Assembly: GCF_032444005.1 (NCBI RefSeq)
Contig: NC_091283.1
Location: 836,008,001-836,072,000, forward strand
Reading direction: 5' to 3'
DNA length: 64,000 nt
Source: Ranitomeya imitator
Taxonomy: Eukaryota
In this document: piece by piece, positions 1,260 through 59,019 of the stretch
Numbering within the stretch: position 1 is the first letter of the stretch
Layout: every line of letters starts with the position of its first letter
The notes under the pieces: generated by a model
Told to the model about the DNA's origin: nothing
Database searches by the model: none
Seen by the model: only the letters and a program-made list of their open reading frames with translations
Position numbers and translations under genes: made by a program

Positions 1260-3230
1260 ATGTGAACTGTCAGGGATGGTCTCAATCTGCTTAGTTTGCT
1301 GTAGTGGAATACGTGTCGGTCACTATTATACTATTTCTAGTCTCATGAAATTGATGCCACTTCGGTGTCAGGCCCTCATTTTTTGAAATTTGAAATTTCT
1401 TTGTTGAGTGTCCATCTACTGGGTTGGCGGTAGTGGAAGATGTGTATACTATTTCTACTGTGGGGAAATTGATGCAACTTTGGTTTTGTCTGCCACTAAT
1501 TTTTGGAAATGTCAACACTCCTGGTTGGGTGTCCATCTGCTCAGTTGACTGCAGTGGAAAAGATGTCGGTCCCTAATGTATTTTTTCTAGTCTCGTGAAA
1601 TTGATGCCAATTTGGGGGTGTCTTCCAATAATTGATTGAAATGTGAACGGTCCTGGATGGGAGTCCATTTGCTGGGTTGGCTGTCATGGAAATAATGTCT
1701 CTCCCCATTACACTATTTCTCCTGCGGTGAAATTGGTACCACTTTGGTGTTGTCTGCAGCTAATTTTTGGAAATATGAACACACCTGATTGGTTCTCTCC
1801 ATCTGCTTGGTTGTTTGTAGTGGAAGATGTGTCGGTCCTTTTTATACTACTTGTACTCTGGTGAAATTCGCGCCACTTTGGAGGTGTCTGCCACTAAATT
1901 TTTGAAAATGTGAGCATTCCTGGTTGGGTGTCTATCTGCTGGGTTGGCTGTCGTGGAAAAGATGTCGCTCCCCATTATAATATTTCTGATGTAGTGAAAT
2001 GGGAAACCACTGGGTAAATCTGACAGGGAGAAGGACTTGGGGATCCTAGTTAATGATAAACTTACCTGGAGCAGCCAGTGCCAGGCAGCAGCTGCCAAGG
2101 CAAACAGGATCATGGGGTGCATTAAAAGAGGTCTGGATACACATGATGAGAGCATTATACTGCCTCTGTACAAATCCCTAGTTAGACCGCACATGGAGTA
2201 CTGTGTCCAGTTTTGGGCACCGGTGCTCAGGAAGGATATAATGGAACTAGAGAGAGTACAAAGGAGGGCAACAAATTTAATAAAGGGGATGGGAGAACTA
2301 CAATACCCAGATAGATTAGCGAAATTAGGATTATTTAGTCTAGAAAAAAGACGACTGAGGGGCGATCTAATAACCATGTATAAGTATATAAGGGGACAAT
2401 ACAAATATCTCGCTGAGGATCTGTTTATACCAAGGAAGGTGACGGGCACAAGGGGGCATTCTTTGCGTCTGGAGGAGAGAAGGTTTTTCCACCAACATAG
2501 AAGAGGATTCTTTACTGTTAGGGCAGTGAGAATCTGGAATTGCTTGCCTGAGGAGGTGGTGATGGCGAACTCAGTCGAGGGGTTCAAGAGAGGCCTGGAT
2601 GTCTTCCTGGAGCAGAACAATATTGTATCATACAATTATTAGGTTCTGTAGAAGGACGTAGATCTGGGGATTTATTATGATGGAATATAGGCTGAACTGG
2701 ATGGACAAATGTCTTTTTTCGGCCTTACTAACTATGTTACTATGTTACTATGTTACTATGAAATTGATGCCACTTTGGAGGTTTCTGCCACTAATTTTTG
2801 TAAATGTGAACACTCCTGGTTGGTTGTCCATCTGCTGGTTTTTTTTGTAGTGGAGGAAGTGTTGATCTCTTTTATACTATTTCTACTGTGGTGAAATTGA
2901 TTCGACTTTTGTGGTGTCTGCAATAAATTGTTTAAAATGTGAACACTCCTGACTGGGTTTCTTCATCTGCTGGATTGGCTGTAGTGGAAGATGTGTCGGT
3001 CCCCATTAACTATTTCTACTCTGGTGAAATTGGTGCCACTTTCTTGGTGTTTGACACAAATTTTTGGAAATCTCTACGTTCCTGGTTGTATCTCCATCTG
3101 CTGGGTTGGCTGTAGTGGAATAGGCGACGGTCCATATTATACTATTTCTACTCTGGTGAAATTGATACCACTTTGTTGGTGTCTGCCTGTAATTTTTGGA
3201 AATGTGGGTCTCCTTCATGTGTGTTGCCTG
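1260..3230. repeat. ~133-bp tandem array (about 10 units) within hAT-derived DNA, interrupted by a CR1
   Basis: The GAAATTGATGCCAC-type motif recurs at 1465, 1597, 1729, 1863, 1996 and, after the CR1, at 2760, 2893, 3026, 3158. Confidence 0.85.
2001..2760 (+). mobile_element. 5'-truncated CR1 LINE (RT C-terminus, 3' UTR, (CTATGTTA)n tail)
   Basis: ORF 2037-2642 has LYKSLVRPHMEYCVQFWAP and LEKRRLRGDLI, typical CR1 ORF2 motifs. Octamer tail at about 2732-2760; TGAAAT is shared at both junctions. Confidence 0.93.
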
Positions 3231-4299
3231 TAGCAGTAGGCCTCCGAGACCGACAGGCCTCCACTTACTTTGAGTCAACTAGCTGTGCTACTATCCTTAC
3301 ATTTTTCTGACAATAGTAATCTACAAAACTAATATTTGTTCCACCTGAGTGTGGCATAGCATCAAAGCAGGTTGAGCTGTTACAACTTGTATCAAGGCTC
3401 CCAGCACAGCTGGCCTACACCGATCCCTCACCCACCTCGTCCTTATTTGACATTCAATTCTATTCTGTAAGTGATGGCCCATGTTATGTTCTGGTGCTTA
3501 GAACAAATAGTGGACCTGATAGTTAGAGCACCAGAAAAGACCTGATAGCACATTAATACAGGACAAGCTCTGGGAAGTGGAACCTCTGCTGACCGCAATC
3601 CCTAATCCTATCACATACACTAGAAATAGCCGTGGAGCGCTCCTATCATGACCTAGGCGCCTCGTCACAGCCTCAGAACTAGCTAGCCCTAGAGATAGGA
3701 AAAATAAGCCTATCTTGCCTCAGAGAAAATTCCCCAAAGGAAAAGGCAGCCCCCCACATATATTGACTGTGAGTAAGATGAAATCACAAACACAGAGATG
3801 AAATAGATTTAGCAAAGAGAGGCCCGACTTACTAAACAGACAGAAGATAGGAAAGGTCACTTTGCAGTCAGCACAAAACCCTAAAAAAGCCACACAGAGA
3901 GTGCAAGGAAAAATACCTTCCGCACCGACTAACGGAGCGGAGGCGCCCCTCTGCGCTTCAGAGCTTTCAGCAAGCAAGGAAATTCACATAAGCATGCTGG
4001 ACAGAAAAAATAGCAAACAAGAAAAAAGCAAAGCAAAACTTAGCTTCAGCTGGAGAAAACAGGTAACCAGGAAGATCCAGGAGCGAACTAGACCAATGCA
4101 ACAACATTGACAGCTGGCATCGGACAAGGATCCAAGTGGAGTTAAATAGAGCAGCCCACTAACGAATTAGCCTCGTCACCTGTGGAAGGAAACTCAGAAA
4201 CACCCACAGGCATCAGAGAAAGTCCATGGACAGAACCAGCCGAAGTACCATTCATGACCACAGGAGGGAGCCCGAAAACAGAATTCACAACAGTACCCC

Positions 4300-7200
4300 T
4301 GTCATGATCCCAATGGCAGGGGATCACAAAAGGACAAGCTCAAAAACAAAACAAGCTCTAGGGTGATGGAAACTGAGCTGACCGCGCTCCTGAACTTAAC
4401 CACACAACTAACAGTAGCCGGGGAACGTGCCTACGATGATCCTAGACGTCTCGCTCCAGCCGAAGGACTAACTTCCCCTATAAGAAGAAACACAGACCTC
4501 ACTTGCCTCCAGAGATACACCCCACAGAAATAGCAGCCCCCCACATGTAATAACGGTGAAATGAGAGGAAATCACAAACGTAGAGATGAAAACAGAATCA
4601 GCAAAAATGAGGCCCGCTAAAGCTAGATAGCAGAGGATACAAAAGTAAACTGCGCGGTCAGCGAAAAACCCTTCAAAAAACCATCCTGAAATTACTTGAA
4701 CTCATGTGCCAACTCATGGAACATGAGGAGTAATTTCAGCCCACTAGAGCAACCAGCAGAAAAAAATCACATAACTGCAAGCTGGACTAAGACAAAATGA
4801 AAACAAAACATAGAACCGGAAAATCAAAACTTAGCTTGTCCAGAAGATCACAGACGCAGGGAGCAGAGGTAAACAGACACGCTGATTACATTGATAGCCG
4901 GCGAGGAAATGACAAGAAAGCCAGGTTAAATAGGAAACACCCATAACCTGATGGAACAGGTGGACACCAGAGACTGCAGAGAACACAAGTCACCCAGTAC
5001 CATCAGTAACCACCAGAGGGAGCCCAAAAACAGAACTCACAACAGTACCCCCCCCCTTGAGGAGGGGTCACCGAACCCTCACGAGAACCACCAGGGCGAC
5101 CAGGATGAGCCCTATGAAAAGCACGGACCAAATCGGCAGCATGAACATCAGAGGCAATCACCCAAGAATTATCCTCCTGACCATAACCCTTCCACTTAAC
5201 CAAATACTGGAGTTTCCGTCTGGAAACACGAGAATCCAAGATCTTCTCCACAACATACTCCAATTCACCCTCCACCAGCACCGGATCAGGAGGCTCAAGA
5301 GAAGGAACGACAGGTACCTCATACTTCCGCAACAACGACCGATGGAACACATTATGAATAGCAAACGATGCTGGGAAATCCAAACGAAACGACACAGGGT
5401 TAAGAATTTCCAAGATCTTATAGGGACCGATGAACCGAGGCTTGAACTTAGGAGAAGAGACCTTCATAGGAACAAAACGAGAAGACAACCACACCAAGTC
5501 CCCAACAAGAAGTCGAGGACCCACGCGGCGACGGCGATTAGCAAACTGCTGAGCCTTCTCCTGGGACAACTTCAAATTGTCCACCACATGACTCCAAATC
5601 CGATGCAACCTATCCACCACCATGTCCACTCCAAGACAATCAGAAGGCTCAACCTGACCAGAGGAAAAACGAGGATGAAACCCCGAATTACAAAAGAAAG
5701 GAGAAACCAAGGTAGCAGAACTAGCCCGATTATTAAGGGCAAACTCGGCAAGCGGCAAAAAGGAAACCCAGTCATCCTGATCAGCAGAAACAAAACACCT
5801 TAAATAAGTTTCTAAAGTCTGATTAGTTCATTCCGTCTGGCCATTCGTCTGGGGATGAAATGCAGACGAAAAGGACAAATCAATGCCCATCTTAGCACAA
5901 AACGTACGCCAAAATCTAGACACAAACTGGGATCCCCTGTCAGAAACGATGTTCTCCGGAATGCCATGCAAACGAACCACGTTTTGAAAAAACAGAGGGA
6001 CCAACTCAGAGGAGGAAGGTAACTTAGGCAAGGGTACCAGATGAACCATCTTAGAGAAACGGTCACACACAACCCAAATGACGGACATTTTTTGAGAGAC
6101 AGGGAGATCCGAAATAAAGTCCATGAAAATGTGCGTCCAAGGCCTCTTTGGAATAGGCAAAGGAGACAACAATCCACTGGCCCGAGAACAGCAAGGCTTA
6201 GCCCGAGCGCAAACTCCACAAGACTGCACGAAAGAACGCACATCCCTCGACAAGGAAGGCCACCAAAAAGACCTGGCCACCAAGTCTCTAGTACCAAATA
6301 TTCCAGGATGACCTGCCAACACAGAAGAATGAACCTCCGAGATGACTCTACTGGTCCAATTATCCGGAACAAACAGTCTTTCCGGCGGACAACGATCAGG
6401 TTTATCCGCCTGAAACAAAATCACTCCATCCCTAAGGATACCAGTAGGCTCAGAATTTCCAGGGGAGTCAGGCAAAACTCCTAGACAAAGCATCCGCCTT
6501 CACATTCTTTGAACCTGGCAGGTATGAAACCACAAAATTGAAACGAGAGAAAAACAGTGACCAACGAGCCTGTCTAGGATTCAGACGCTTGGCAGACTCA
6601 AGGTACATCAGATTTTTGTGATAAGTCAAGACCACCACACGATGTCTAGCACCCTCAAGCCAATGACGCCACTCCTCAAATGCCCATTTCATGGCCAAAA
6701 GCTCCCGATTACCAACATCATAATTTCGTTCAGCGGGCGAAAACTTTCTAGAAAAGAACGCACATGGCTTCATCACTGAGCCATCGGGACTTCTCTGCGA
6801 CAAAACCGCCCCCGCTCCGATCTCGGAAGCATCAACCTCAACCTGAAAAGGAAGCGACGTATCTGGCTGACGCAACATAGGAGCGGAAGAAAACCGGCGC
6901 TTAAGTTCCTGAAAGGCCTCCACAGCCATAGGAGACCAATCAGTAACATCAGCACCCTTTTTAGTCAAATCCGTCAAAGGCTTAACCACACTAGAAAAAT
7001 TAGTTATGAAGCGACGATAAAAATTAGCAAAGCCCAAGAACTTCTGCAGACTCTTAAGAGATTTAGGCTGCGTCCAGTCACAAATAGCCTGAACCTTGAC
7101 GGGATCCATCTCAATAGTGGAAGGGGAAAAAATATACCCCAAAAAAGAAATCTTCTGGACTCCAAAGATACATTTAGAACCCTTTACAAACAAAGAATTG

Positions 7201-9938
7201 GCCCGCAGGACCTGAAACACCTTCCTGACCTGCTGAACATGAGTCTCCCAGTCATCAGAAAAAACCAAAACATCATCCAAATACACGATAATAAATTTAT
7301 CCAGATATTCACGGAAAATATCATGCATAAAAGACTGGAAGACAGAAGGAGCATTAGAAAGTCCAAAAGGCATCACCAAATACTCGAAATGGCCCTCAGG
7401 CGTATTAAATGCGGTTTTCCACTCATCACCCTGCCTTATCCGCACAAGATTATACGCACCCCTAAGATCAATTTTAGTGAACCATTTAGCCCCCTTAATG
7501 CGAGCAAACAAATCAGTCAACAATGGCAAAGGATACTGATATTTGACTGTAATCTTATTCAAAAGACGATAATCTATGCAAGGCCTCAAGGAACCATCTT
7601 TCTTAGCCACAAAAAAGAAACCTGCTCCCAAAGGGGATGAAGATGGACGGATATGCCCCTTTTCCAAGGACTCCTTAATATAATTCCGCATAGCAGCATG
7701 CTCTGGCACTGACAGATTGAACAAACGACCTTTAGGGAACTTACTGCCAGGAATCAAATCTATAGCACAATCGCAATCCCTGTGAGGAGGAAGCGAACTG
7801 AGCTTAGGCTCCTCAAAAAGCTCCCGATAATCAGACAAAAATACCGGAACCTCAGAAGGAGTAGATGAAGCGATAGAAATCGGAGATGCATCATCATGAA
7901 CCCCCTGACATCCCCAGCTTAACACAGACATTGTTTTCCAGTCCAGGACTGGGTTATGAGTTTGTAACCATGGCAGACCAAGCACTAAGACATCATGTAA
8001 ATTATACAGTACCAAAAAGCGAATCACCTCCTGATGAGCGGGAGTCATACGCATGGTCACTTGTGTCCAGTACTGAGGTTTATTCATAGCCAAAGGTGTA
8101 GAATCAATTCCTTTCAAAGGAATAGGAACTTCCAGAGGTTCTAGACTAAACCCACAGCGTTTGGCGAATGACCAATCCATAAGACTCAGGGCAGCGCCTG
8201 AATCCACATAGGCATCGACGGAAATGGATGATAATGAACGAATCAGCGTCACAGACAGAATGAACTTAGACTGTAAACAGACTTATCAACCTTTTTTGTG
8301 CGTTTAGAGCATGCTGATATAACATGAGCTGAATCACCACAATAAAAACACAATCCATTTTTCCGCCTATAATTTTGCCGTTCACTTCTGGACTGAATTC
8401 TATCACATTGCATTATCTCAGGTGCCTGTTCAAAAGACACCGCCAAATGGTGCACAGGTTTGCGCTCCCGTAAACGCCGATCAATCTGAATAGCCATAGT
8501 CATGGACTCATTCAGACCTGTAGGCGCCGGGAACCCCACCATAACATCTTTAATGGCTTCAGAAAGACCATCTCTGAATTTTGCAGCCAGAGCGCACTCA
8601 TTCCACTGAGTAAGCACCGACCATTTCCGAAATTTCTGACAATATATTTCTGCTTCATCTTGCCCCTGAGAGAGAGCTAATAAAGCTTTTTCAGCCTGAA
8701 TCTCAAGGTTAGGTTCCTCATAGAGCAAACCCAATGCCAGAAAAAACGCATCCACATTGAGCAACGCAGGATCCCCTGGTGCCAATGCAAATGCCCAATT
8801 CTGAGGATCCCCCCGCAGGAAAGATATAACAATCTTGACCTGCTGAGCAGGGTCTCCAGAAGAGCGAGATTTCAAGGAAAGAAACAACTTGCAATTATTC
8901 CTAAAATTCAAAAAACTAGATCTATCTCCAGAAAAAAACTCTGGGACAGGAATTCTAGGTTCAGAGATAGGCGTATGTACAACAAAATCTTGTATATTTT
9001 GAACCTTAGAAGCAAGATTATTCAGGCTAGAAGCCAAACTCTGGACGTCCATGATAAACAGCTGAAGTCAGAGCCATTCAAAGATTAAGAGAAGGAGGAA
9101 AAAAAAAAAAAAAATATCCTCAGACTACATTTCCTCCTACTTCAGCCAAAACGAAGACCAATTTATTTTTTATGGCCGGCTATACTGTCATGATCCCAAT
9201 GGCAGGGGATCACAAAAGGACAAGCTCAAAAACAAAACAAGCTCTAGGGTGATGGAAACTGAGCTGACCGCGCTCCTGAACTTAACCACACAACTAACAG
9301 TAGCCGGGGAACGTGCCTACGATGATCCTAGACGTCTCGCTCCAGCCGAAGGACTAACTTCCCCTATAAGAAGAAACACAGACCTCACTTGCCTCCAGAG
9401 ATACACCCCACAGAAATAGCAGCCCCCCACATGTAATAACGGTGAAATGAGAGGAAATCACAAACGTAGAGATGAAAACAGAATCAGCAAAAATGAGGCC
9501 CGCTAAAGCTAGATAGCAGAGGATACAAAAGTAAACTGCGCAGTCAGCGAAAAACCCTTCAAAAAACCATCCTGAAATTACTTGAACTCATGTGCCTACT
9601 CATGGAACATGAGGAGTAATTTCAGCCCACTAGAGCAACCAGCAGAAAAGAATCACATAACTGCAAGCTGGACTAAGACAAAATGAAAACAAAACATAGA
9701 ACCGGAAAATCAAAACTTAGCTTGTCCAGAAGATCACAGACGCAGGGAGCAGAGGTAAACAGACACGCTGATTACATTGATAGCCGGCGAGGAAATGACA
9801 AAAAAGCCAGGTTAAATAGGTAAATAGGAAACACCCATAACCTGATGGAACAGGTGGACACCAGAGACTGCAGAGAACACAAGTCACCCAGTACCATCAG
9901 TAACCACCAGAGGGAGCCCAAAAACAGAACTCACAACA
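4300..9938 (-). mobile_element. Ty3/Gypsy chromovirus LTR retrotransposon B, nested in the PPT of A
   Basis: LTRs at 4300-5044 (745 bp) and 9186-9938 (753 bp). TACCCC is duplicated at 4294-4299 and 9939-9944. Own PPT next to 5045. Confidence 0.96.
5003..9052 (-). pseudogene. Element B gag-pol, frameshifted (gag 8249-9052; PR-RT-RH 6468-8252; IN 5828-6493; IN-end/chromodomain 5003-5758)
   Basis: CFYCGDSAHVISAC knuckle, VDSGA protease, YLDD RT, integrase core and YVVEKILDSR..YLVKWKGY chromodomain are split over several frames. Confidence 0.9.
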
Positions 9939-12118
9939 TACCCCCCCTTGAGGAGGGGTCACCGAACCCTCACGAGAGCCCCCAGGCCGACCAGGATGAG
10001 CCAAATGAAAGGCACGAACTAGATCGGCCGCATGAACATCAGAGGCAAAAACCCAGGAATTATCCTCCTGACCATAACCCTTCCACTTGACCAAGTACTG
10101 GAGTTTCCGTCTCGAAATACGAGAATCCAAAATCTTCTCCACCACATACTCCAACTCCCCCAACACCGGAGCAGGAGGGTCAACGGATGGATCCACAGGC
10201 GCCACGTATCTCCGCAACAACGACCTATGGAACACATTATGGATGGCAAAAGAATCTGGAAGGGCCAAACGAAATGACACAGGATTGATAACCTCAGAAA
10301 TTTTATACGGACCAATGAAACAAGGCTTAAACTTAGGAGAGGAAACCTTCATAGGAACATAACGAGACGACAACCAAACTAAATCCCCAACACGAAGTCG
10401 GGGACCCACACAGCGCCGGCGGTTAGCGAAACATTGAGCCTTCTCCTGGGGCAATGTCAAATTGTCCACCACATGAGTCCAAATCTGCTGCAACCTATTC
10501 ACCACAGTATCTACACCAGGACAGTCCGAAGACTCAACCTGCCCTGAAGAGAAACGAGGATGGAAACCAGAATTGCAGAAAAACGGCGAAACCAAAGTAG
10601 CCGAGCTGGCCCGATTATTAAGGGCAAACTCAGCCAATGGCAAAAAGGACACCCAATCATCCTGATCAGCAGAAACAAAGCATCTCAGATATGTTTCCAA
10701 CGTCTGATTAGTTCGTTCGGATTGGCCATTTGTCTGAGGATGGAAAGCCGAGGAAAAAGACAAATCAATGCCCATCCTAGCACAAAAGGATCGCCAAAAC
10801 CTCGAAACAAACTGAGAACCTCTGTCCGAAACGATGTTCTCCGGAATGCCATGTAAACGAAACACATGCTGGAAAAACAATGGCACCAAATCAGAGGAGG
10901 AAGGCAATTTAGACAAGGGTACCAAATGGACCATCTTAGAAAAGCGATCACAAACCACCCAAATGACCGACATCTTTTGAGAGACGGGGAGATCCGAAAT
11001 AAAATCCATAGAAATATGCGTCCAGGGCCTCTTCGGGACCGGCAAGGGCAAAAGCAACCCACTAGCACGAGAACAGCAGGGCTTAGCCCAAGCACAAGTC
11101 CCACAGGACTGCATAAAAGAACGCACATCCCGTGACAAAGAAGGCCACCAAAAGGATCTAGCCACCAAATCTCTGGTACCAAAGATTCCAGGATGCCCAG
11201 CCAACACCGAACAATGAAGCTCAGAGATAACTCTGCTAGTCCATTTATCAGGGACAAACAGTTTCTCCGCTGGGCAACGGTCAGGTCTATCAGCCTGAAA
11301 TTTTTGCAGCACCCGCCGCAAATCAGGGGAGATGGCAGACAAAATTATCCCCTCTTTGAGAATACCTGCCGGCTCAGAAACACCCAGAGAGTCAGGCACA
11401 AAACTCCTTGACAGGGCATCAGCCTTCACATTCTTAGAGCCCGGAAGGTACGAAACCACAAAATCAAAACGGGAGAAAAATAACGCCCATCGAGCCTGTC
11501 TCGGATTCAACCGTTTGGCAGACTCAAGATAAGTCAAATTTTTGTGATCTGTCAAGACCACCACGCGATGCTTGGCTCCTTCAAGCCAATGACGCCACTC
11601 CTCGAATGCCCACTTCATGGCCAACAATTCTCGATTACCAACATCATAATTGCGCTCAGCAGGCGAAAACTTTCTAGAAAAGAAAGCACATGGCTTCATT
11701 CCTGAGCCATCAGAACTTCTTTGCGACAAAACAGCCCCTGCTCCAATCTCAGAGGCATCAACCTCAACCTGAAACGGGAGTGAAACATCTGGCTGGCACA
11801 ACACAGGGGCAGAAGAAAAACGACGCTTCAATTCCTGAAAAGCATCCACGGCCGCAGAAGACCAATTGACCACATCAGCACCCTTCTTGGTCAAATCAGT
11901 CAACGGTTTAGCAACACTAGAAAAATTAGCGATGAAGCGACGATAAAAATTAGCAAAGCTCAGGAACTTTTGCAGGCTCTTCACAGATGTCGGCTGAATC
12001 CAATCATGAATGGCCTGGACTTTAACAGGGTCCATCTCGACAGTAGAAGGGGAAAAAATGAACCCCAAAAATGAAACCTTCTGAACTCCAAAGAGACACT
12101 TTGACCCCTTCACAAACA
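9897..12118 (-). CDS. Element A pol 3' part (end of RT, RNase H, integrase, chromodomain)
   Basis: Open frame of the 767-aa ORF; its first residues come from the CR1 insert. Contains RH, HHCC/DDE integrase and chromodomain. Confidence 0.9.
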
Positions 12119-12377
12119 TAGTAACATAGTAACATAGTAACATAGTTAGTAAGGCCGAAAAAAGACATTTGTCCATCCAGTTCAGCCTATATTCCATCAT
12201 AATAAATCCCCAGATCTACATCCTTTTACAGAACCTAATAATTGTATGATACAATATTGTTCTGCTCCAGGAAGACATCCAGGCCTCTCTTGAACCCCTC
12301 GACTGAGTTCGCCATCACCACCTCCTCAGGCAAGCAATTCCAGATTCTCACTGCCCTAACAGTAAAGAATCCTCTTT
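12119..12377 (-). mobile_element. ~260-bp CR1 3' end inserted into the RT of element A
   Basis: Reverse complement of 2500-2760 with a (TAACATAG)n tail at 12119-12145. AACA occurs at both junctions; removing the insert restores [11 protein letters not shown]. Confidence 0.92.
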
Positions 12378-14254
12378 AACAAGGAATTAGCACGAAGGAC
12401 CTGGAACACCATTCTGACCTGCTTCACATGAGACTCCCAATCATCCGAAAAGACCAAAATATCATCCAAATACACAATCAGGAATTTATCCAGGTACTCT
12501 CGGAAAATGTCATGCATAAAGGACTGAAATACTGATGGAGCATTGGAAAGCCCGAATGGCATCACCAGGTACTCAAAATGGCCCTCGGGCGTATTAAATG
12601 CTGTTTTCCATTCATCGCCCCGTTTAATACGCACAAGATTATACGTCCCTCGAAGGTCTATCTTGGTAAACCAACTAGCTACTTTAATACGAGCAAACAA
12701 GTCGGACAGCAACGGCAAAGGATACTGAAATTTGACAGTAATTTTATTAAGAAGGCGGTAATCAATACATGGTCTCAAAGAACCATCCTTCTTGGCCACA
12801 AAAAAGAACCCTGCTCCCAACGGTGATGACGATGGGCGAATATGGCCTTTCTCCAAGGATTCCTTTATATAACTCCGCATAGCGGCGTGTTCTGGCACAG
12901 ATAAATTGAACAATCGGCCCTTAGGAAACTTACTTCCAGGAATCAAATTAATTTCACAATCGCAATCCCTATGAGGAGGTAGGGCACTGGCTTTGGGCTC
13001 ATCAAATACATCCTGATAATCCGACAAAAACTCCGGAACTTCAGAAGGAGTAGAAGACGAAATTGACAAAAATGGAACATCACCATGTACCCCCTGGCAA
13101 CCCCAGCTGGACACAGACATAGATTTCCAGTCCAATACTGGATTATGGACCTGTAGCCATGGTAACCCTAAAACGACCACATCATGCAGATTATGTAACA
13201 CCAACAAATGGATATCCTCCTGATGTGCAGGAGCCATGCACATGGTCAGTTGGGTCCAGTACTGAGGCTTATTCTTGGCCAAAGGCGTAGCATCAATTCC
13301 TCTCAATGGAATAGGATACTGCAAGGGCTCCAAGAAAAAACCACAGCGCCTGGCATACTCCAAGTCCATCAAATTCAGGGCAGCGCCTGAATCCACAAAT
13401 GCCATAACAGAATAGGATGACAAAGAGCAAATCAGTGTAACGGACAAAAGAAATTTAGACTGTACCGTACCAATGGTGGCAGACCTAGCGAACCGCTTAG
13501 TGCGCTTAGGACAATCGGAGATAGCATGAGTGGAATCACCACAGTAAAAACACAGCCCATTCCGACGTCTGTGTTCCTGCCGTTCAGTTCTGGTCAAAGT
13601 CCTATCACACTGCATAGGCTCAGGCCCATGCTCAGATAGTACCGCCAAATGGTGCACAGTTTTACGCTCACGCAAGCGCCGATCGATCTGAATGGCCAAG
13701 GACATAGACTCATTCAGACCAGCAGGCATGGGAAATCCCACCATGACATCTTTAAGGGCTTCAGAGAGACCCTTTCTGAAAATTGCTGCCAGGGCACATT
13801 CATTCCACTGAGTGAGCACAGACCACTTTCTAAACTTCTGACAATATATCTCTGCTTCATCCTGACCCTGACACAGAGCCAGCAAGATTTTCTCTGCCTG
13901 ATCCACTGAATTAGGTTCGTCATAAAGCAATCCGAGCGCCAGGAAAAATGCATCCACATCACGCAATGCCGGATCTCCTGGCGCAAGGGAAAATGCCCAG
14001 TCTTGAGGGTCACCACGTAACAAAGAAATAATGATCCTTACTTGTTGAGCAGGATCACCTGAGGAGCGAGGTTTCAAAGCTAGAAACAATTTACAATTAT
14101 TTTTGAAATTCAAGAACTTAGATCTATCACCAAAAAACAAATCAGGAATTGGAATCCTAGGCTCTGACATCGGATTCTGAACCACAAAATCTTGAATGTT
14201 TTGTACCCTTGTAGTGAGATTATCCATCCAAGAGAACAGACCTTGAATGTCCAT
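12378..14254 (-). CDS. Element A gag-protease-RT 5' part (single frame)
   Basis: Probable ATG at 14254 (MDIQ). CFYCGDSTHAISDC knuckle, VDSGA, YLDD. Confidence 0.9.
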
Positions 14255-16786
14255 GTCTACACCTGTGTTCTGAACCACTCAGAGGTAAAGGGGAAAAGTG
14301 AGACAGAACACGCTGCAAAGAAAAAAAAATGGTCTCAGAGCTTCACTTATCCCTCTATTGAGATGCATCAATACTTTTGGCCAGCTGTACTGTTATGTTC
14401 TGGTGGTTAGAACAAATAGTGGACCTGATAGTTAGAGCACCAGAAAAGACCTAATAGCACATTAATACAGGACAAGCTCTGGGAAGTGGAACCTCTGCTG
14501 ACCGCAATCCCTAATCCTATCACGTACACTAGAAATAGCCGTGGAGCGTTCCTATCATGACCTAGGGGCCTCATCACAGCCTCAGAACTAGCTAGCCCTA
14601 GAGATAGGAAAAATAAGCCTATCTTGCCTCAGAGAAAATTACCCAAAGGAAAAGGCAGCCCCCCACATATATTGACTGTGAGTAAGATGAAATCACAAAC
14701 ACAGAGATGAAATAGATTTAGCAAAGAGAGGCCCGACTTACTAAACAGACAGAAGATAGGAAAGGTCACTTTGCAGTCAGCACAAAACCCTAAAAAAGCC
14801 ACACAGAGAGTGCAGGGAAAAATACCTTCCGCACCGACTAACGGAGCGGAGGCGCCCCTCTGCGCTCCAGAGCTTCCAGCAAGCAAGGAAATTCACATAA
14901 GCATGCTGGACACAAAAAATAGCAAACAAGAAAAAAGCAAAGCAAAACTTAGCTTCAGCTGGAGAAAACAGGTAACCAGGAAGATCCAGGAGCGAACTAG
15001 ACCAATGCAACAACATTGACAGCTGGCATCGGACAAGGATCCAAGTGGAGTTAAATAGAGCAGCCCACTAACGAATTAGCCTCGTCACCTGTGGAAGGAA
15101 ACACCCACAGGCATCAGAGAAAGTCCATGGACAGAACCAGCTGAAGTACCATTCATGACCACAGGAGGGAGCCCGAAAACAGAATTCACAACAGGCCCAG
15201 ACCCTGATACCTCATGCCTGGCTGAGTGCTGCCGCGCCATTCCAAAATTTGTACTGTGCGTGAACTGAGGCCACTTTCCTGGTGTCTGCCCCTAATTTAA
15301 TATGTTTTGGCAGCTTTTGGGCCCATTTGAAGGTATTGTGTATGCGTTTCTTTTTGCCTCCCAATGACCGTGTGCACACAGCCTTAGTGGAAACTCGAAT
15401 ATTTACTGAACTTTGGCCAAATTTTGCCAATTTTGAGGAAAATGCTCGGGAATCCAAACATGAATCCAAATATGCAAGGTTCTTACCAACTTTGACATTG
15501 GCAACATTTTCCGAACAAGTTCACTCATCTCTAGTGAAATTCAGGTAATCCCTTGGATTCAAGGATTCAACACCTTAGTTTAGTCTGAAGTCACATTTGT
15601 TCCAACCTCTCTTCTCAGGTTTGTTTGGGGTTCCTCAGAGATAAGTGCTCGATCATCTCCACTTTATTTTCTATGAAGCCCCTACTGTTATTTGCCATAA
15701 CATTTCTATGTTGATAACATTAAAATACATACTTCTTTTTGGTTTCGTCACGTCTGCACAACCACAAAACTTTTCAGATCAATCCTGATATGCTAAAATT
15801 TGTACATACTAAAAATAGAGGTCCCAAAAATCCAGCCGTTGATAACCCCATTTAGAGGTGACTTTGGAGCCAATAATTGGGGTCTATCTTTTATAGGATG
15901 ATTTATAAATAATATTACAGATCTTATTGATGATCTGTACTGTGTGTACAATGATTAATTTAGTACAAAGTCTATGATGCTATTAAAAGTGGATGTACAC
16001 GTACTTTGCATGCTCTAAATTTATTCAAGTCAGGCTTTACCCCAGTTTCTGTTACCTCTCATCAATTCTAGGTGATTGCCAGCACATATCCGATGGTATC
16101 TTAAGTCCTGACTACATGGATTCCTTTTAACATTTTGGATGGAAGCTATTAGACAGTCATTTGTCAATCAATGTGAGGTAGATGTTGCCCAGGCAAATAA
16201 AATGATGAGATGCACATGATTAGATCATAGTATTACTCTTTACTGAGCAGTCTCACTATAGAACCCAGTGCTCCATGATGTGGTCATTCAAGACTTAAGT
16301 CAATAATATGTTATATTTTTCCAAAAAAGCTGTCTTGGCACTCTCTGCAAAGGAAAATGGTCCTCCTTTAACCACTAGTCAGAGGCACCTCACCTAGACA
16401 CATTAGATGTAACACTTTTCACTGAAGAAGGGCAACACCCCAAAACATGTGAAAGTGGAGTTTCTGTTTTGATTCTTAACCTAAGTCATGTGGCAAGGCT
16501 CGTTAAGGGATTGACATTGACTTTTAAGATTGCTACATCCAATGAGTGGCACCACAGATCATGCCATCTTCCTTCTGAAGAAGTTATTTGCATATCAAAA
16601 ATAACAAAAATTGGAAACAGTTCAATCTCATATGAACTAAATGGAAATGGCTTTCAACTTTCCAAGAATGAAAAACTGAAGCTTTTCTTTGGTTTAACTT
16701 TTTATTGGTTGCGAACCTCCACAATGTTGTGAACTACAATAAGGTAGCAGAGTAAGAGAAGATGACAATCAGAAGATGGAAAATGT

Positions 16787-19360
<2,574 letters not shown>

Positions 19361-19919
19361 GATGGATCCAGAGACAATATGGACTGAGCACAATCCACAG
19401 ATATTTATACCCAAAAATTATCACCCCTCTACACCCTCCTCAGCCTAGAGAAAGTTAATTATTATCCACATAGCCTAAAATATACATGATAATCTATGGA
19501 TGAAGGTCACTTATATAGAAATGTTCTTCTGGTGGTTTGATTAGATATACCCATAGTTTCCTAGTATTTATGGTTAAAAGTAGACATATGTCCATTGAGT
19601 GTAACATGTTGATCCAGAGTTAGGCATAAAAAAACCTGAGGTAGATGTTGATTAACTAATATTGGGGGTAAACTCTTTCTTGACTCCACATACCGCAATC
19701 ACACGAATTCTCAGGATCAATTCTCCATCACAGAATGTAGTATTCATAAACTATAATGTTATATAAAACCCCAAGTTTAATTACCTGTCTTGTTATTGAG
19801 TCCACCCATTCCCTTAATAATCTTGCTCGCTCTTCTGTGCACCGCTCTTCTTCAGCTACGTCCTTCTTATACACTTCTTATACACTGGAGCCCAAAATTG
19901 TACCCTGTACTCTATGTGC

Positions 19920-23809: not shown

Positions 23810-24851
23810 GCATCGTCATCTGCTGGGTTGGCTGTCGTGGAAAAGATGTTGCTCCCCATTATGATATTTCTTCTGTGGTGAAATTGGTGCCACTTTGGAT
23901 GTGTCTGCCACTAATTTTTGGAAATGTGAACACTCCTGGTTGGTTGTCCATCTGCTTGGTTTTTCTGTAGTGGAGGAAATTTTAGTCCCATTTATACTAT
24001 TTCTACTGTGGAGAAATTGATTCCAATTTGTGGTGTCGGCAAAAATTTTTTAAAATGTGAACACTCCTGATTGGGTTTCTCCATCTGCTGGATTGGCTGT
24101 AGTGGAAGATGTGTCGGTCCGCATTAACTATTTCTAGTGAAATTGGAGCCACTTTGTTGGTGTTTGACACAAATTTTTGGAAATCTGTACGTTCCTGGTT
24201 GTATCTCCATCTGCTGGGTTGGCTGTAGTAGAAGAGGTGTCGGTCCCTATTATACTATTTCTGTTGAAATTGATGTCACTTTGTTGGTGTGTGCCTGTAA
24301 TTTTTGGAAATGTGGGTCTCCTTCATATGTGTTGCCTGTAGCAGTAGGCCTCTGAGAACGACAGGCCTCCACTTACTTTGAGTCAACTACCCGTATTACA
24401 GTCCTTACATTTTTCTGACAGTAGTAGTCTACAAAACTGATATTTGTTCCACCTGAGTGTGGCATAGCATCGAAGCAGGTTGAGCTCTTACATGTTGTAT
24501 CAAGGCTCCCAGCACAGCCGGCCTACACCGATCCCTCACCCACCTCGTCCTTATTTGACATTCAATTCTGTAAATGCTGACCCAGACACTGATACCTCAT
24601 GCCTGGCTGACTGCTGCCGTGCCATTCCAAAATTTGTACTGAGGCCACTTTCCTGGTGTCTGCCCCTAATTTGATGTGTTTTGGCAGCTTTTGGGCCCGT
24701 TTGAAGATATTGTGTATGCATTTCTTATGCCTCCCAATGACTCCTATGGCATTCGACCATGTTTCGTGAATATTCGACAAATAAATAGGCGAATATTGAA
24801 AATGTGTCCATTCACTGTAATACAAACCGAACATATATTCGCTCATCTCTA
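23810..24851 (+). mobile_element. hAT element right end: ~4 units of the 133-bp array, conserved spacer and TIR
   Basis: Homologous to 2760-3481 plus 15194-15360; ends TTCGCTCATCTCTA at 24851. Confidence 0.75.
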
Positions 24852-27029: not shown

Positions 27030-30811
<3,782 letters not shown>

Positions 30812-40444: not shown

Positions 40445-43400
40445 TGTTAGGACTGGCGGAACGCACCAAGACAGGTGACAAAGATGCGTTCGCAGTCCGG
40501 GGTCCACCGTGCAGGTGAGAACCTGCTGCTAGCAATTTGCAGACTATATAGCGGTACACTAAAGTAAACACGCGTGGGTTAAACCTCACCCAGCGTGAGG
40601 AAAACGATCCTGTTAATTCACAGGACCGCAATACCGCACTAGAGTGCGAGCAAGTGGCCAGCGGACTTAACCCCAGAAGGGATTGAAGCCCGATTAGGCC
40701 CTTGCTGGCACAACACCGCAACTGGGTGTGTAGAGAACCTTCAGAAATATAAGCGCACAAGTGCGCGAGCGATGCCGCACTAACGGACGCCACTAACCAC
40801 CCAGACTTGGGTATGGAAAGCGCAAGGCAGGCGCACGGCGCCGTACTGGCAGGCACAGCTACAGGACGCTGTGATGTGTGTTTAGTGTAGTAGGCCAAGT
40901 CGGGCGCTAGATAGCAGCCGTACACCTTCCGCGAACAGACATTCAATAGGGAAGGGGTAACCAAGAACGACTTGCACTCACACATACACACATATCAATT
41001 GTAAGACAATACTAGCGCATGGCCGTGCGGTCATGCGCAGTTTATATAGCTGCAGCACAGGAAATGGCTATAGAACTTTTGCCCTTCTAGGACCTGCCAA
41101 GAGGACCAATGGAATGTGCCGCAGAGCCTGAGCACATGACCCTCGATCTCCAACGGGAGATCTTGCCCTGGGCATGCTCAGTGTGTGCAGATAAGGACTT
41201 AGTCCCAGAGAAGTCCGCTCGCTGCTGACCAGAATAGGCTTCAAAGGCAGAAGCTGGAGAAGCAGCAATAACTCTTCTCACAGAGTCAGACTGAGCGAGA
41301 CGCTGGGATCGACGTCCCTGCTGAGCAGACTCCACTGCGGCTGGAGGGGAATGGGAGACCGCAGCGGAGACGGATCGAGATTCCCCCTGTGCAGCAGAGG
41401 AAACTCGACTCCTAACATTACCCCCCCTCCTAGGGCCCCCCCCTCCTTGGGCCTCGCTACGCTCGAAGGCAGCAATGAGCTGTGGGGCCCGAATGTTTTC
41501 AGCAGGCTCCCAAGACCTGTCCTCTGGACCATAACCCTTCCAATCCACCAAATAAAACTTTTTGCCGCGTACCACCTTGCACCCCAAAATAGCGTTCACC
41601 TCGTAATCGTCCGTAGACGAACCCGATGTCCCGGCAGATGACTCGGAAAACCGGGACATGTATACGGGTTTCAAGAGGGACACATGAAAGGTGTCGGTGA
41701 TACCCAAGCGTGGAGGAAGAGCCAGGCGGTAGACCACGGGATTAACCTGCTCGAGGACCTTGAATGGGCCCAAGTAGCGAGGAGCAAACTTAGTGGACTC
41801 AACTCGCAGCCTGATGTTACGGGCGGAGAGCCACACCAAGTCGCCAGGAGCAAAGGCCGGGGCAGGGCGCCGATGTGCATCGGCGGAGGACCTCATTCTC
41901 TCCTTCGAGGCCCGAATGGCATCCTGAGTGCGGTCCCAAATGTCCCGTGCCTCCACTGCCCAGTCTGCCACCCTGGAGTCAGCAGAGGACACGGGCATAG
42001 GCACAGGAACCCGCGGATGCTGGCCGTAATTAAGGAGGAAAGGAGTCTGACCGGTGGAATCGGCTACAGCGTTATTAAGGGCGAACTCTGCCCATGGTAA
42101 TAAAGATGCCCAGTCATCCTGCCTGGCAGAAACAAAATGTCGCAGATATGTGACCAGAGTCTGATTGGCCCTCTCTACCAACCCATTCGTCTCGGGATGA
42201 TATGCGGAAGAGAGATTTAACTCAATGCTGAGAAGACGACAAAGCTCTCTCCAGAACCGAGACGCAAACTGGGGACCCCGGTCACTGACAATTTTGTCTG
42301 GCATGCCGTGTAGGCGGAAGATGTGTCTTATGAACAACGCTGCCAAGGCCCGTGCAGAAGGTAACCGTGGGAGCGGCACCAAGTGCACCATTTTCGAGAA
42401 ATGATCGGTAATTACCCAAATGACGGTACAGCCGCGAGACTTGGGCAAACCCACCACAAAGTCCATCCCGACCATCTCCCAGGGCCTGTCTGCCACCGGC
42501 AAGGGATAGAGTAACCCAGACGGCCGTTGTCGAGGAGACTTATTTTTGGCGCATGAGACACACGCCAGAACGTAGTCCCTGACATCTCGCAGCATATGCG
42601 GCCACCAGTACGTCCTCGCCAGCAGCTCAGATGTCCTTTTAGTCCCAAAGTGTCCACCCACCCTGGAGGAATGAGCCCAAGAGAGAACCTCCGGTCGCAA
42701 ATTTATGGGCACAAAAGTCTTGCCCGGAGGCACAGACTCAAGCGACACCGGAGCCACGGTTCTCAAGCTCTCAGAAGGAACAATAAGCCGAGGCTCTCCT
42801 TCCTCCTCCTCAGATGACACAACAGAGCGAGAAAGAGCATCAGCTCGAATGTTCTTCTCCCCAGCGACATAATGGAGGGTGAAGTGGAATCGGGAGAAGA
42901 ATAAGGACCATCTGGCCTGGCGAGAATTTAGCCTCTGGGCTGTTTGCAAATATAGCAAATTTTTATGGTCTGTAAATACTTGAAAGGGAAAACGAGCCCC
43001 CTCCAAGAGATGTCTCCACTCAGAGAAAGCCAATTTCATCGCCAGCAACTCCCTGTCCCCGATGGAATAATTCCTCTCCGCTGGTGTGAAGGTCTTGGAG
43101 AAGAAAAAGCACGGATGCTTCCGACCTTGAGCATCCTTCTGGAAGAGGACTGCTCCAGCACCAACGGAAGAGGCATCCACCTCCATTATAAACGGCTTAT
43201 CGACATCGGGACGATGTAGGATGGGAGCGCTAGCAAAATGAGACTTAGTAGAAGAAAAGGCCTTGGAGACCTCTTCAGACCACACTTTGGGATTTGCTCC
43301 CTTCTTGGTGAGGGCTACCAAGGGAGCTACCAAAGTTGAGAAATGGGGGATGAACTGGCGGTAATAATTAATGAACCCCATAAAGCGCTGCACCGCTTTA

Positions 43401-46400
43401 AGTGAATGGGGTTCTTGCCAGTCCATCACAGCCTGTAGTTTGGCAGGATCCATAGCCAATCCTTGGGCAGAGATGATATAGCCCAGGAAAGGTAAAGACT
43501 CCTGCTCAAACACACACTTCTCCAACTTTGCGTAAAGAGAGTTTGCCCGTAAGAGGTCGAAGACTCTGCCAACATCTCTCCGGTGGGAGTCAATATCTGG
43601 AGAGAAGATGAGAATATCATCCAGATAGACTACGACCGAGGTGGAAAGCATATCCCGGAAGATGTCGTTGACAAAGTCTTGGAAAACGGCTGGGGCATTA
43701 CAGAGCCCGAAGGGCATCACCAGATACTCATAATGCCCATCTCTGGTGTTAAACGCCGTCTTCCATTCGTCCCCCTCACGAATGCGAATCAGGTTATAAG
43801 CTCCCCGCAGGTCTAATTTGGTAAATACCTTAGCTCCCCGTAGCCTATCAAAAAGCTCAGAAATCAGGGGCAGCGGGTACTTATTTTTAACGGTGATGGC
43901 GTTAAGACCCCTGTAGTCTATGCAAGGACGCAACTCTCCATTCTTCTTCTGTACGAAGAAGAACCCTGCCCCAGCTGGTGACACTGACTTCCTAATAAAT
44001 CCTCTTGCCAAATTCTCCTGGATGTATTGGGACATAGCCTCCGTTTCCGGGAGAGAGAGGGGATAGACACGTCCCCGAGGAGGTTCTGCTCCAGGCAAGA
44101 GATCTATAGGACAGTCATAGGGACGGTGAGGCGGAAGGGTCTCCGCGGCTTTTTTGGAAAAGACGTCTGCATAAGACCAATAGTGTTTGGGGAGAGTAGA
44201 GAGATCTGCGGGTATCTCAGTGGTGGAAACCTGAACGCACTCTTTCACACATCTGCCCTTGCAGGATTCACTCCAACCCAATATCCTCCCAGAGGTCCAC
44301 TCAATATGTGGGGAGTGGAAACGAAGCCAGGGCATTCCCAGCAGAATCTCATCCATTCCCTCGGGAAGGACAAGAAGGGAAATAGTCTCCTGGTGGGATG
44401 GGGACATGGCTAACGTGAAAGGGACAGTCTGATGTGTGATCTGTAATGGAAGTGTCGACCCATTCACCACTCTCACGGTTACTGGTCTGGCTAGCATAGC
44501 CAGAGGTATTGCGTGGCGCTGAGCAAAAGCAGAAGACATAAAATTTCCCTCTGCTCCTGAATCCACACAAAGCTCTACTGTAAGAGTGGATGTGCCTAAC
44601 AGGATTGTCCCTTTAAAGGACAATTTTGAGGAAAATGCCGCGGTGTCCAGTGAACCTCCTCCAATGGACACTAGACGCGATCGTTTTCCCGACCGCCGTG
44701 GACATGTATTAGCGAAATGTCCCGGTTGCTGGCAATTTTTACATAACACAGGTACTCGAGCGGTCTGAGACCTAGATCCCGCTCGAGAAACCTCCATGGC
44801 CTCATGGGAGTCGGACGCCATAACAGGAGATTCTAGAGGTTTGGCAAAGATGGGAGCCAGCCGAAACCTCTGCCTACACTGGGTCCGCTCCAACCTCCGC
44901 TCGTTAAAACGGAGATCGATGCGGGTAGCTATAGTAATGAGCTCCTCCAGTGTGGCGGGAATCTCCCTGGTGGCCAAGGCGTCCTTCACATGATCTGCCA
45001 GTCCTCTCCAGAACACCGGAATAAGGACTTTATCCGGCCATTCCAGCTCAGAAGCTAGAGTCCGGAATAGGATGGCAAACTGGCTGACCATGGACGAAGC
45101 CTGAGTAATTGCCAACAATTGGAGCGCGGTATCGTGGGTGACACGAGGTCCCAGAAAGACCTGCCTCAGAGCGTCCAGGAAGATAGGAGCACTCTGCACC
45201 ACACGATCACCACGTTCCCAAAGCGGCGTTGCCCACTCCAACGCCCTGCCCGACAAGAGAGATATAATGAATCCCACTTTCGCCCGTTCCGTAGGAAAAC
45301 GTGCAGCCAGCAGCTCGAGATGTATGGAGCACTGGCTCACGAATCCCCGACATGGCTTACTGTCACCAGCAAACTTGTCTGGAAGCGGGAGACGGGATAA
45401 AGTCGGAGCAGGGGTGGCAGCGGACAAACTGGCTGCAGCTGCACTTGCAGCCTGAACAGCGACAGCAGTAACGTCCACAGCTGAGGTTGTGCGCTCGAGA
45501 GCCGCCAACCTACCCTCCAGCTGCTGGATGTACTGCTGTAGACGCTGACCGTCTGCCATTTACTAGCCAGACCCTGGCGCTAGTATTATGTTAGGACTGG
45601 CGGAACGCACCAAGACAGGTGACAAAGATGCGTTCGCAGTCCGGGGTCCACCGTGCAGGTGAGAACCTGCTGCTAGCAATTTGCAGACTATATAGCGGTA
45701 CACTAAAGTAAACACGCGTGGGTTAAACCTCACCCAGCGTGAGGAAAACGATCCTGTTAATTCACAGGACCGCAATACCGCACTAGAGTGCGAGCAAGTG
45801 GCCAGCGGACTTAACCCCAGAAGGGATTGAAGCCCGATTAGGCCCTTGCTGGCACAACACCGCAACTGGGTGTGTAGAGAACCTTCAGAAATATAAGCGC
45901 ACAAGTGCGCGAGCGATGCCGCACTAACGGACGCCACTAACCACCCAGACTTGGGTATGGAAAGCGCAAGGCAGGCGCACGGCGCCGTACTGGCAGGCAC
46001 AGCTACAGGACGCTGTGATGTGTGTTTAGTGTAGTAGGCCAAGTCGGGCGCTAGATAGCAGCCGTACACCTTCCGCGAACAGACATTCAATAGGGAAGGG
46101 GTAACCAAGAACGACTTGCACTCACACATACACACATATCAATTGTAAGACAATACTAGCGCATGGCCGTGCGGTCATGCGCAGTTTATATAGCTGCAGC
46201 ACAGGAAATGGCTATAGAACTTTTGCCCTTCTAGGACCTGCCAAGAGGACCAATGGAATGTGCCGCAGAGCCTGAGCACATGACCCTCGATCTCCAACGG
46301 GAGATCTTGCCCTGGGCATGCTCAGTGTGTGCAGATAAGGACTTAGTCCCAGAGAAGTCCGCTCGCTGCTGACCAGAATAGGCTTCAAAGGCAGAAGCTG

Positions 46401-46561
46401 GAGAAGCAGCAATAACTCTTCTCACAGAGTCAGACTGAGCGAGACGCTGGGATCGACGTCCCTGCTGAGCAGACTCCACTGCGGCTGGAGGGGAATGGGA
46501 GACCGCAGCGGAGACGGATCGAGATTCCCCCTGTGCAGCAGAGGAAACTCGACTCCTAACA
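40445..46561 (-). mobile_element. Full-length Ty3/Gypsy chromovirus C (Tf1/sushi-like)
   Basis: 973-bp LTRs at 40445-41417 and 45589-46561 with no differences noticed. TGTTAGGA..TCCTAACA termini; GAACGG TSD at 40439-40444 and 46562-46567; PPT at about 41420-41430. Confidence 0.98.
41087..45559 (-). CDS. Element C single gag-pol polyprotein (1490 aa): Gag, CCHC, protease, RT, RNase H, integrase, chromodomain
   Basis: Uninterrupted ORF with [30 protein letters not shown] integrase and [27 protein letters not shown]. Confidence 0.97.
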
Positions 46562-48683: not shown

Positions 48684-50420
48684 TAGAGATGAGCGAATAT
48701 TTCAATATTCGACTTGGATTACTACGTTCGCTGAATTTGCAATATTCGCCTATTAATTCCTCGAATATTCGCCGAACATAACTGTTGTGAATTCTGTTGT
48801 CGGGCTCCTTCCTGCGGTCATGAATGGTACTTCGGCTGGTTCTGTCCATGGACTTCCTCTGGTGGGTGTTTCTGAGTTTCACAGGTGACGAGGTTAATTC
48901 GTTAGCTGCTGCTCTATTTAACTCCACTTAGATCTTTGCTCCATGCCACCTGTCAATGTTCCAGTATTGGTCTGTTCACTCCTGGATCGTTCTTGTGACC
49001 TGTCTTCCCATCAGAAGCTAAGTTCCAGCTTGTATTTCTTTGGTTTGCTATTTTTCTGTCCAGCTTGCTATTTAATTTGTTGTCTTGCTTGCTGGAAGCT
49101 CTGGGAAGCACAGGGAGCGCCTCCGCACCGTGAGTCGGTGCGGAGGGTCTTTTTGCGCCCTCTGCGTGGTCTTTTTGTAGGTTTTTGTGCTGACCGCAAA
49201 GTAACCTTTCCTATCCTCGGTCTGTTCAGTAAGTCGGGCCTCACTTTGCTAAATCTATTTCATCTCTGTGTTTGTATTTTCATCTTTACTCACAGTCATT
49301 ATATGTGGGGGCTGCCTTTTCCTTTGGGGAATTTCTCTGAGGCAAGGTAGGCTTTATTTTTCTATCTTCAGGGCTAGCTAGTTTCTTAGGCTGTGCCGAG
49401 TTGCATAGGGAGCGTTAGGCGCAATCCACGGCTATTTCTAGTGTGTTTGATAGGTTTAGGGATTGCGGTCAGCAGAGTTCCCACGTCCCAGAGCTCGTCC
49501 TTATTATCAGTAACTATCAGGTCATTCCGTGTGCTCTTAACCACCAGGTCCATTATTGTCCTGACCACCAGGTCATAACACATAACCGAACACCATTATA
49601 GTCAATGGGAGGCAAAAACAAATGCATGCACAACACCTTAGAACGTCCCCAAATGGTGACAAAAGGCATCAAATGAGGGACAGACACCAGGAAAGTCGCC
49701 TCAATTCACCCACAGTACAAATACAAATTGCAGCATGGAACTGCAGCAATCAGCCAGGCATGAGGTATCGTGGTCTGGGCCAGCATTTACAGCTTTCCAA
49801 TGAACATCACAGTAAAATGAGTGGGTGAGGGATCAGTGTAGGGCCCCTTTGCTGGGATACCACATGCAACAGCTCTACCTGCTTTCATGCTGAGCCACAC
49901 TCAGGTGGCACAAATATCAGTTTTGTAAACTACCATTGTCAGAAAAATGTAAGGATAGTAACATGGGTAGTTGAATGCAAGGAAGTGGAGGCCTGACGGT
50001 CTCAGAGGCCTACTGCTACAGGTAACACACGTGAAGGAGACCCAACCAGGAGTGTTCACATTTCCAAAAAATATTGGCAGACACCACCAAAGTGGCATCA
50101 ATTTCACCACAGTAGAAATAGTCTAATAGGGACAAACAGGTCTTCCACTACACCCAATCCAGCAGATGGACACCCAACCAGGAGTGTTCACGTTTCCCAA
50201 AATTATTTGCAGACACCACCAATGTGGCATCAATTTCACCACAGTAGAAATAGTAGATTAGGGACGACAGGTTTTTCACTACACCCAATCCAGCAGATGA
50301 ACACCCATTCAGGAGGGTTCACATTTAAAGAAATGAGGGCCTTACCCCACAAAAGTGGCATCAATTTCACCACAGTAGAAATAGTCTAAAAGGGACCAAG
50401 AGGTCTTTCGCTACACCCAA
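48684..50420 (-). mobile_element. hAT element right end, inverted (TIR, spacer, ~3 units of the 133-bp array)
   Basis: TAGAGATGAGCGAA at 48684; 49590-50420 is the reverse complement of the spacer and array seen at 23810-24850. Confidence 0.75.
48783..49580 (+). mobile_element. Solo LTR (798 bp) related to element A
   Basis: TGTTGTGAATTC..CATAACA termini; CATAAC TSD at 48777-48782 and 49581-49586; aligns to the reverse complement of the A LTR. Confidence 0.93.

Positions 50421-56378: not shown

Positions 56379-59019
<2,641 letters not shown>

Follow-up and report, generated by a model that had tools for sequence, protein, structure and literature searches.

A stretch of 64,000 nucleotides (nt) from Ranitomeya imitator (NC_091283.1, positions 836,008,001 to 836,072,000; the whole stretch is called the window here) contains two nested long terminal repeat (LTR) retrotransposons, A and B, in both of which a 9-nt segment of the LTR is perfectly complementary to the 9 nt starting 2 nt (GT) past the LTR-terminal ACA. 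From the position and conservation of these paired segments we consider it probable (about 0.8) that A and B, together with a third element of the window, C, start reverse transcription by self-priming of the Tf1 type, with the 5' end of the element RNA as the predicted primer and the segment past the LTR as the predicted primer-binding site (PBS). For A and B this was also the reading of the initial annotation of the window, and the three window elements plus seven relatives, all with perfect pairing, support it.

Predicted primer and primer-binding site in elements A and B

The relevant features of the two elements are the following:

15051..15057, minus strand: TATA-like box of A, TATTTAA, its first T 30 nt upstream of the self-primer
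15019..15027, minus strand: predicted self-primer of A, GCCAGCTGT, taken as RNA +1 to +9
14380..14388, minus strand: PBS of A, ACAGCTGGC, 2 nt (GT) past the LTR and followed by C
9812..9818, minus strand: TATA-like box of B, TATTTAA, 30 nt upstream of the self-primer
9780..9788, minus strand: predicted self-primer of B, GCCGGCTAT, the counterpart of the RNA-start stretch of A
9175..9183, minus strand: PBS of B, ATAGCCGGC, 2 nt (GT) past the LTR and followed by C

All six motifs were found on the minus strand exactly where the initial annotation had placed them. The spacing of 30 nt that it gave between box and primer, counted from the initial T of the box to base 1 of the primer, is exact in both elements, and its placing of the PBS 2 nt past the LTR was equally accurate, as each LTR ends in ACA and is followed by GT and then by the PBS. 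Its claim that A and B lack a PBS of the transfer RNA (tRNA) type also held, with no TGG starting within 6 nt of the LTR end in either of them. The sequence right after the LTR reads GTACAGCTGGCC in A, GTATAGCCGGCC in B and TAATACTAGCGC in C, and none of the three has at the LTR border the TGG by which a tRNA-type PBS is recognized.

A and B differ at two primer positions, and both differences are compensated in the PBS. From A to B, the change of A to G at primer position 4 is matched by T to C at PBS position 6, which turns an A:T pair into G:C, and the change of G to A at primer position 8 is matched by C to T at PBS position 2, which turns G:C into A:T. The joint change of primer and PBS, with all 9 base pairs (bp) kept, is thus as had been described. 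The 3' LTRs of A and B each keep the primer of their own 5' LTR (at 4110 and 4894 in plus-strand reading).

Data from public runs were available as Logan contigs, which for this high-copy family are pieces of 70-400 nt, and were placed on 9150-15100 and 14372-15036. Among the variants listed for A-like copies, none of at least 12% falls inside primer or PBS, with depth being low at the ends of these stretches. In the B 5' LTR, an 8-bp duplication (CCTATTTA) lies directly before the TATA-like box (9812-9826) and is missing from the 3' LTR (4929-4935); the spacing between box and primer is unaltered by it.

Pairing in other families and species

The window holds two further cases of this layout, element C, which belongs to a distant chromovirus family, and, for box and primer, a solo LTR, D:

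40445..46561, minus strand: element C, with LTRs of 973 nt that are 100% identical, target duplication CCGTTC and one uninterrupted gag-pol open reading frame (ORF) of 1490 amino acids (aa)
starting at 46192, minus strand: TATA-like box of C, TATATAA, with the self-primer 30 nt on
46162-46152, minus strand: self-primer of C, GCGCTAGTATT, an 11-nt complement of the PBS
45587-45577, minus strand: PBS of C, AATACTAGCGC, 1 nt past the LTR and followed by C
48783..49580, plus strand: solo LTR D, 82% identical to the LTR of A, with target duplication CATAAC
48915-48921, plus strand: TATTTAA box of D, with a primer variant 30 nt on
48945-48953, plus strand: third primer variant, GCCACCTGT; as D is a solo LTR, it offers no PBS for comparison

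C shows identity of about 65%, in patches, and it is a very recent insertion, given its identical LTRs, its 6-bp target duplication and its intact ORF of 1490 aa. The PBS predicted for the D subfamily (ACAGGTGGCC; D copies are expected to carry ACAGGTGGC) is absent from the 64-kb window. When the LTRs of A, B, D and Xenopus were aligned, TATTTAA and a GCC at fixed spacing stood out as invariant islands amid poor conservation.

Relatives were sought as loci encoding homologous proteins, and the LTR/PBS junctions were read in each of them. Seven such loci (from Xenopus, Engystomops, Takifugu, Pimephales, Hemibagrus and two assembled contigs) form, together with A, B and C, a comparison set of ten elements from at least seven sources:

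L015, Xenopus laevis: primer GCCTGGTTAT, PBS ATAACCAGGC, with TATTTAAA at -30 and a GT spacer
L012, Engystomops pustulosus: primer GCTGGCTATT, PBS AATAGCCAGC
L011, Logan contig: primer GCTGGCTAAT, PBS ATTAGCCAGC, with one compensated change relative to L012
L013, Takifugu flavidus: primer GCTTGATCTA, PBS TAGATCAAGC
L014, Tara scaffold: primer GCTCGTTCGTC, PBS GACGAACGAGC
L016/L017, Pimephales promelas: primer GTCAGATCGTT, PBS AACGATCTGAC
L018, Hemibagrus guttatus: primer GCGAAGTAAT, PBS ATTACTTCGC

In all seven relatives a TATA-like box lies 28-30 nt upstream of the primer, and the PBS begins 1-2 nt past the CA of the LTR. Within each of the ten elements, primer and PBS complement each other at all 9 anchored positions. 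The 90 cross-pairs between elements reach a mean of 4.4 of 9 and a maximum of 8, and the observed total was reached in none of 100,000 permutations. Motifs, spacing and perfect pairing are retained across families that are divergent in sequence, and the subfamilies with broken complementarity that the initial annotation had envisaged as contrary evidence were not seen in this set. Compensated changes number two between A and B, four between A and the Xenopus element L015, and one between L011 and L012. Moreover, the predicted +1 base is G and the -1 base is T or C in all ten elements, and in every one of them the pairing ends sharply at the predicted +1. Such a pyrimidine-purine step is typical of transcription start sites.

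The expectation by chance depends on whether position is considered. When LTRs were shuffled and a match anywhere in the LTR was counted, regardless of its position, a complement of at least 9 nt to the 16 nt past the LTR was found in 58 of 3000 shuffles for A and 60 of 3000 for B (around 2%); for the 11-nt match of C the figure was 2 of 3000 (0.07%). Likewise, ignoring position, about 45 inverted 9-mers within 250-1300 nt of each other occur in the 9.6-kb locus L012. Inverted 9-mers free of any constraint on position are thus common, and what counts is that each end of the real pair has its set place: the real match lies exactly 30 nt past the sole TATA-like site in B and past one of two in A.

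Two other observations were made in the course of this comparison. At 12699-13135 of L018 there is a second, older Hemibagrus element with a 9-nt pair (CGAGATATT with AATATCTCG), which has A at +1 where its relative has G and may be a decayed copy. The P0246 family (L001-L010) consists of Logan contigs from ten runs that carry gag (304 aa) and pol, look transcript-like and are identical across many runs. In this family the junction CA-GT-AGCAGACAGCC is present, yet no complementary LTR stretch or self-primer was found. Contigs from four runs share their first base, TGTTGTTCC; this common start was rejected as a transcript start, as TGTTGTTCC looks like an LTR edge.

Probable self-priming and competing explanations

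The Tf1 priming model has been summarized previously (PMC5341516, PMC10085805), and by analogy with it transcript start, cleavage and priming in A, B and C can be envisaged as follows. RNA polymerase II would start about 30 nt past the TATA-like box of the LTR, at a G that follows a pyrimidine, and the RNA would be capped. Its first 9 nt (11 in C) would anneal to their complement, which lies 1-2 nt beyond the 5' LTR, the RNase H of the element would cut directly past the paired stretch, and the released 3' end would prime minus-strand DNA through the U5 and R regions of the LTR. About half of the Tf1 complementary DNA (cDNA) ends in a PBS copied from retained primer (PMC11042837). If plus-strand copying of the primer took place here as in Tf1, a primer mutation would pass into the PBS in a single cycle, and we infer from this copying back that the paired changes of A and B would be easy to fix.

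Several points have to be set against self-priming or qualify it. No pile-ups of contig starts or ends were reported among the Logan contigs, which are fragmented; over the A and B stretches, the RNA depth in these contigs followed the DNA depth, so that they speak neither for nor against the predicted start. In A, B and C, the R-U5 portion of the LTR showed no canonical poly(A) signal of the AATAAA type. Pairing in A and B extends over 9 nt, compared to 11 in Tf1. The side duplexes of the Tf1 "pretzel" are, in A and B, no better than in shuffled sequences (fraction as good or better, 0.58-0.84). Finally, minimum-energy and centroid folds of A, B and C speak for self-priming, as they pair the RNA 5' end with the PBS, with z-scores between -2.9 and -5.5, but the folded RNA began at the predicted +1 and ended shortly after the PBS, and a start at +1 favours a closing helix. 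In two relatives, L014 and L015, the pretzel duplex downstream of the PBS did beat the shuffles (0.003 and 0.017, respectively).

The strongest competitor is that the pairing forms a conserved long-range helix of the 5' leader, closing R-U5 for packaging, dimerization or translation control, while some other primer, such as a fragment of a host RNA, is used. The folds agree with it insofar as the helix closes a large structured domain in them, and the insignificant pretzel duplexes of A and B point the same way. To our knowledge, self-priming has been demonstrated experimentally in fission yeast only, and the vertebrate case rests on sequence signatures. However, a leader helix with no role in priming would have to account for a paired site that in all ten elements occupies exactly the place of a PBS, 1-2 nt past the terminal CA of the LTR, with no other PBS candidate, and for a helix whose start always coincides with the predicted first RNA base. 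In addition, Tf1 and Tf2, relatives from fungi, are primed by this same pairing (PMC10085805, PMC5341516). We therefore hold this explanation to be unlikely.

Most LTR elements are primed by tRNAs, and the PBS of A does contain a TGG, 7 nt past the LTR, so that the PBS could in principle bind the 3' end or an internal fragment of a host tRNA, the match to the LTR being incidental. This is very improbable in our view: neither A nor B nor C has a TGG at the LTR border, and the PBS, although most of its positions vary between families, always fits its own LTR, which a fixed host tRNA cannot explain. No tRNA gene was found within the 64-kb window. Chance complementarity that A and B inherited from a common ancestor can practically be dismissed, common as inverted 9-mers are when position is ignored, since both ends are fixed (one 30 nt from the TATA box, the other 1-2 nt from the LTR end), changes are compensated, unrelated families have the same layout and no permutation reached the observed pairing.

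Self-priming thus being preferred, one more feature of the junction deserves attention. In all ten elements the PBS is directly followed by C, often as CAA (14379, 9174 and 45576 in the window; L011-L018 elsewhere). As the -1 base is always T or C and never G, this invariant C cannot belong to the templated helix. It could conceivably be a footprint of the RNA cap, although we regard this as rather doubtful. In one variant, the cap guanosine would pair with the invariant C. In another, reverse transcriptase would add a C opposite the cap while copying the retained self-primer, and only elements with C at this place could then be extended after the second strand transfer. If a cap footprint were indeed present, the exact position of the capped RNA 5' end could be read off the PBS region from sequence alone. 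The combination of an invariant C past the PBS with a -1 base that is never G may be new.

Self-priming is regarded as a common feature of Tf1/sushi elements, those of vertebrates included (PMC10085805, PMC4600332, PMC6317226), and Butler et al. 2001 (J Mol Evol 52:260), as cited in PMC4600332, PMC6317226 and PMC10085805, is the reference given for self-priming "from fungi to vertebrates". The statement in the initial annotation that the mechanism is established in Tf1 and proposed for the Tf1/sushi group agrees with these three papers. Its further claim, that covariation within the nested pair is direct structural support in a vertebrate, stands only in part: the compensated pairing is real, but the support is comparative, with the start being predicted, and the idea is not new for vertebrates.

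Tf1 and Tf2 of Schizosaccharomyces pombe, as well as Tj1, Tosmo and Tcry1 of other fission yeasts, are also chromodomain Ty3/gypsy elements with a PBS past the 5' LTR that is complementary to their own RNA start, and C shares with Tf1 the single gag-pol ORF and the pairing over 11 nt. Differences are that self-priming is demonstrated in Tf1 and predicted in the frog elements, that the frog primers begin with GC, and that the three-duplex pretzel needed by Tf1 (PMC10085805) did not stand out from shuffled sequences in A and B. With the vertebrate Tf1/sushi group (sushi-ichi of Takifugu and others) the frog elements have in common a vertebrate host, the chromodomain and the self-priming signature. 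The Takifugu flavidus element L013, for instance, encodes a protein 46% identical to that of C, and its primer and PBS pair over 10 nt, with ATAAAAG as the box about 30 nt upstream. What sets the frog families apart from the known members of this group is that they are new, that their copy number is very high and that two of their elements form a nested pair distinguished by two compensated differences. Plant Tcn1 (Ty3/gypsy) and TAR (Ty1/copia) elements (Neumann et al. 2019, PMC6317226) similarly lack a tRNA-type PBS and have one complementary to their own LTR, although they belong to other hosts and lineages, and self-priming is a prediction there too.

What is new here is therefore a set of frog families, those of A, B and C, together with a neat example of covariation; the mechanism itself was already known, and our understanding of it is unchanged by these elements. 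Their value lies in the testable geometry that they define together with the seven relatives: a TATA-like box near -30 (between -28 and -30 in the relatives), a pyrimidine at -1 next to G at +1, pairing over 9-11 bases, and a PBS that begins 1-2 nt past the CA of the LTR and is followed by C. This geometry gives exact predicted start sites in frogs and provides a simple annotation rule for elements that are missed by tRNA-based PBS finders.

Architecture of A and B and other repeats of the window

The overall structure of A and B is as follows:

15193-3482, minus strand: element A, LTR retrotransposon with target duplication TGGGCC on both sides
14391..15193, minus strand: 5' LTR of A, TGTTGTGAATTC...AACATAACA, 97.5% identical to 4292-3482, ending in ACA at 14391
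9939..14390, minus strand: internal region of A, with gag, protease, reverse transcriptase, RNase H, integrase and chromodomain; frame broken; foreign insert of 260 bp at 12117-12376
3482..4292, minus strand: 3' LTR of A, with the same primer stretch as the 5' LTR at 4118-4110
9938-4300, minus strand: element B, LTR retrotransposon with target duplication GGGGTA
9186..9938, minus strand: 5' LTR of B, 98.4% identical to 5044-4300, ending in ACA at 9186
5045..9185, minus strand: internal region of B, with the gene order of A, in several ORF pieces; frame broken
4300..5044, minus strand: 3' LTR of B, with the same primer stretch as the 5' LTR at 4902-4894

B is nested in A, having inserted into the polypurine tract of A, 1 nt from its 3' LTR; the insertion junctions are at 4293-4299 and 9939-9944, with GGGGTA duplicated. 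The internal regions of the two elements are 76-81% identical, and their LTRs can be aligned only partly, at about 71%. Pfam domains follow the order gag, protease, reverse transcriptase, RNase H and integrase, in a single ORF in C and in ORF pieces in A and B. A chromodomain (PF00385) lies C-terminal of the integrase, after SH3_Tf2-1, in A, B and C (E values from 3e-13 to 7e-14). This domain set is of the chromovirus type, and A, B and C are chromodomain Ty3/gypsy retrotransposons. The proteins closest to those of A and B come from Ranitomeya imitator itself, with up to 96% identity and many at 74-96%, and the copy number of the A/B family is very high. Proteins of the A, B and C type are 40-50% identical to those of fish elements with the same signature, some of which have been automatically named Tf2 polyprotein.

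The 260-bp insert in the reverse transcriptase region of A (12117-12376, minus strand) recurs inverted at 2501-2760 on the plus strand with 99% identity. Other genomic copies of the A family are without it (joint of 12114 to 12378), and in RNA-labelled runs its depth is 10-50 times that of its flanks. A comparison of the insert with Rfam gave no match. It is probably an abundant short non-autonomous repeat.

Apart from these elements, the window contains a multi-kb repeat in three copies of 75-99% identity, at 16594-19518, 26837-30969 and 56352-58891 (families D1-D6, D14, D15 and D18). Tandem units of about 133 bp, 96% identical, are found at 36452-36879, with related copies of this unit at 1452-1777, 2759-3206 and 23879-24029 (families D7, D9 and D10); the units have a satellite-like look.

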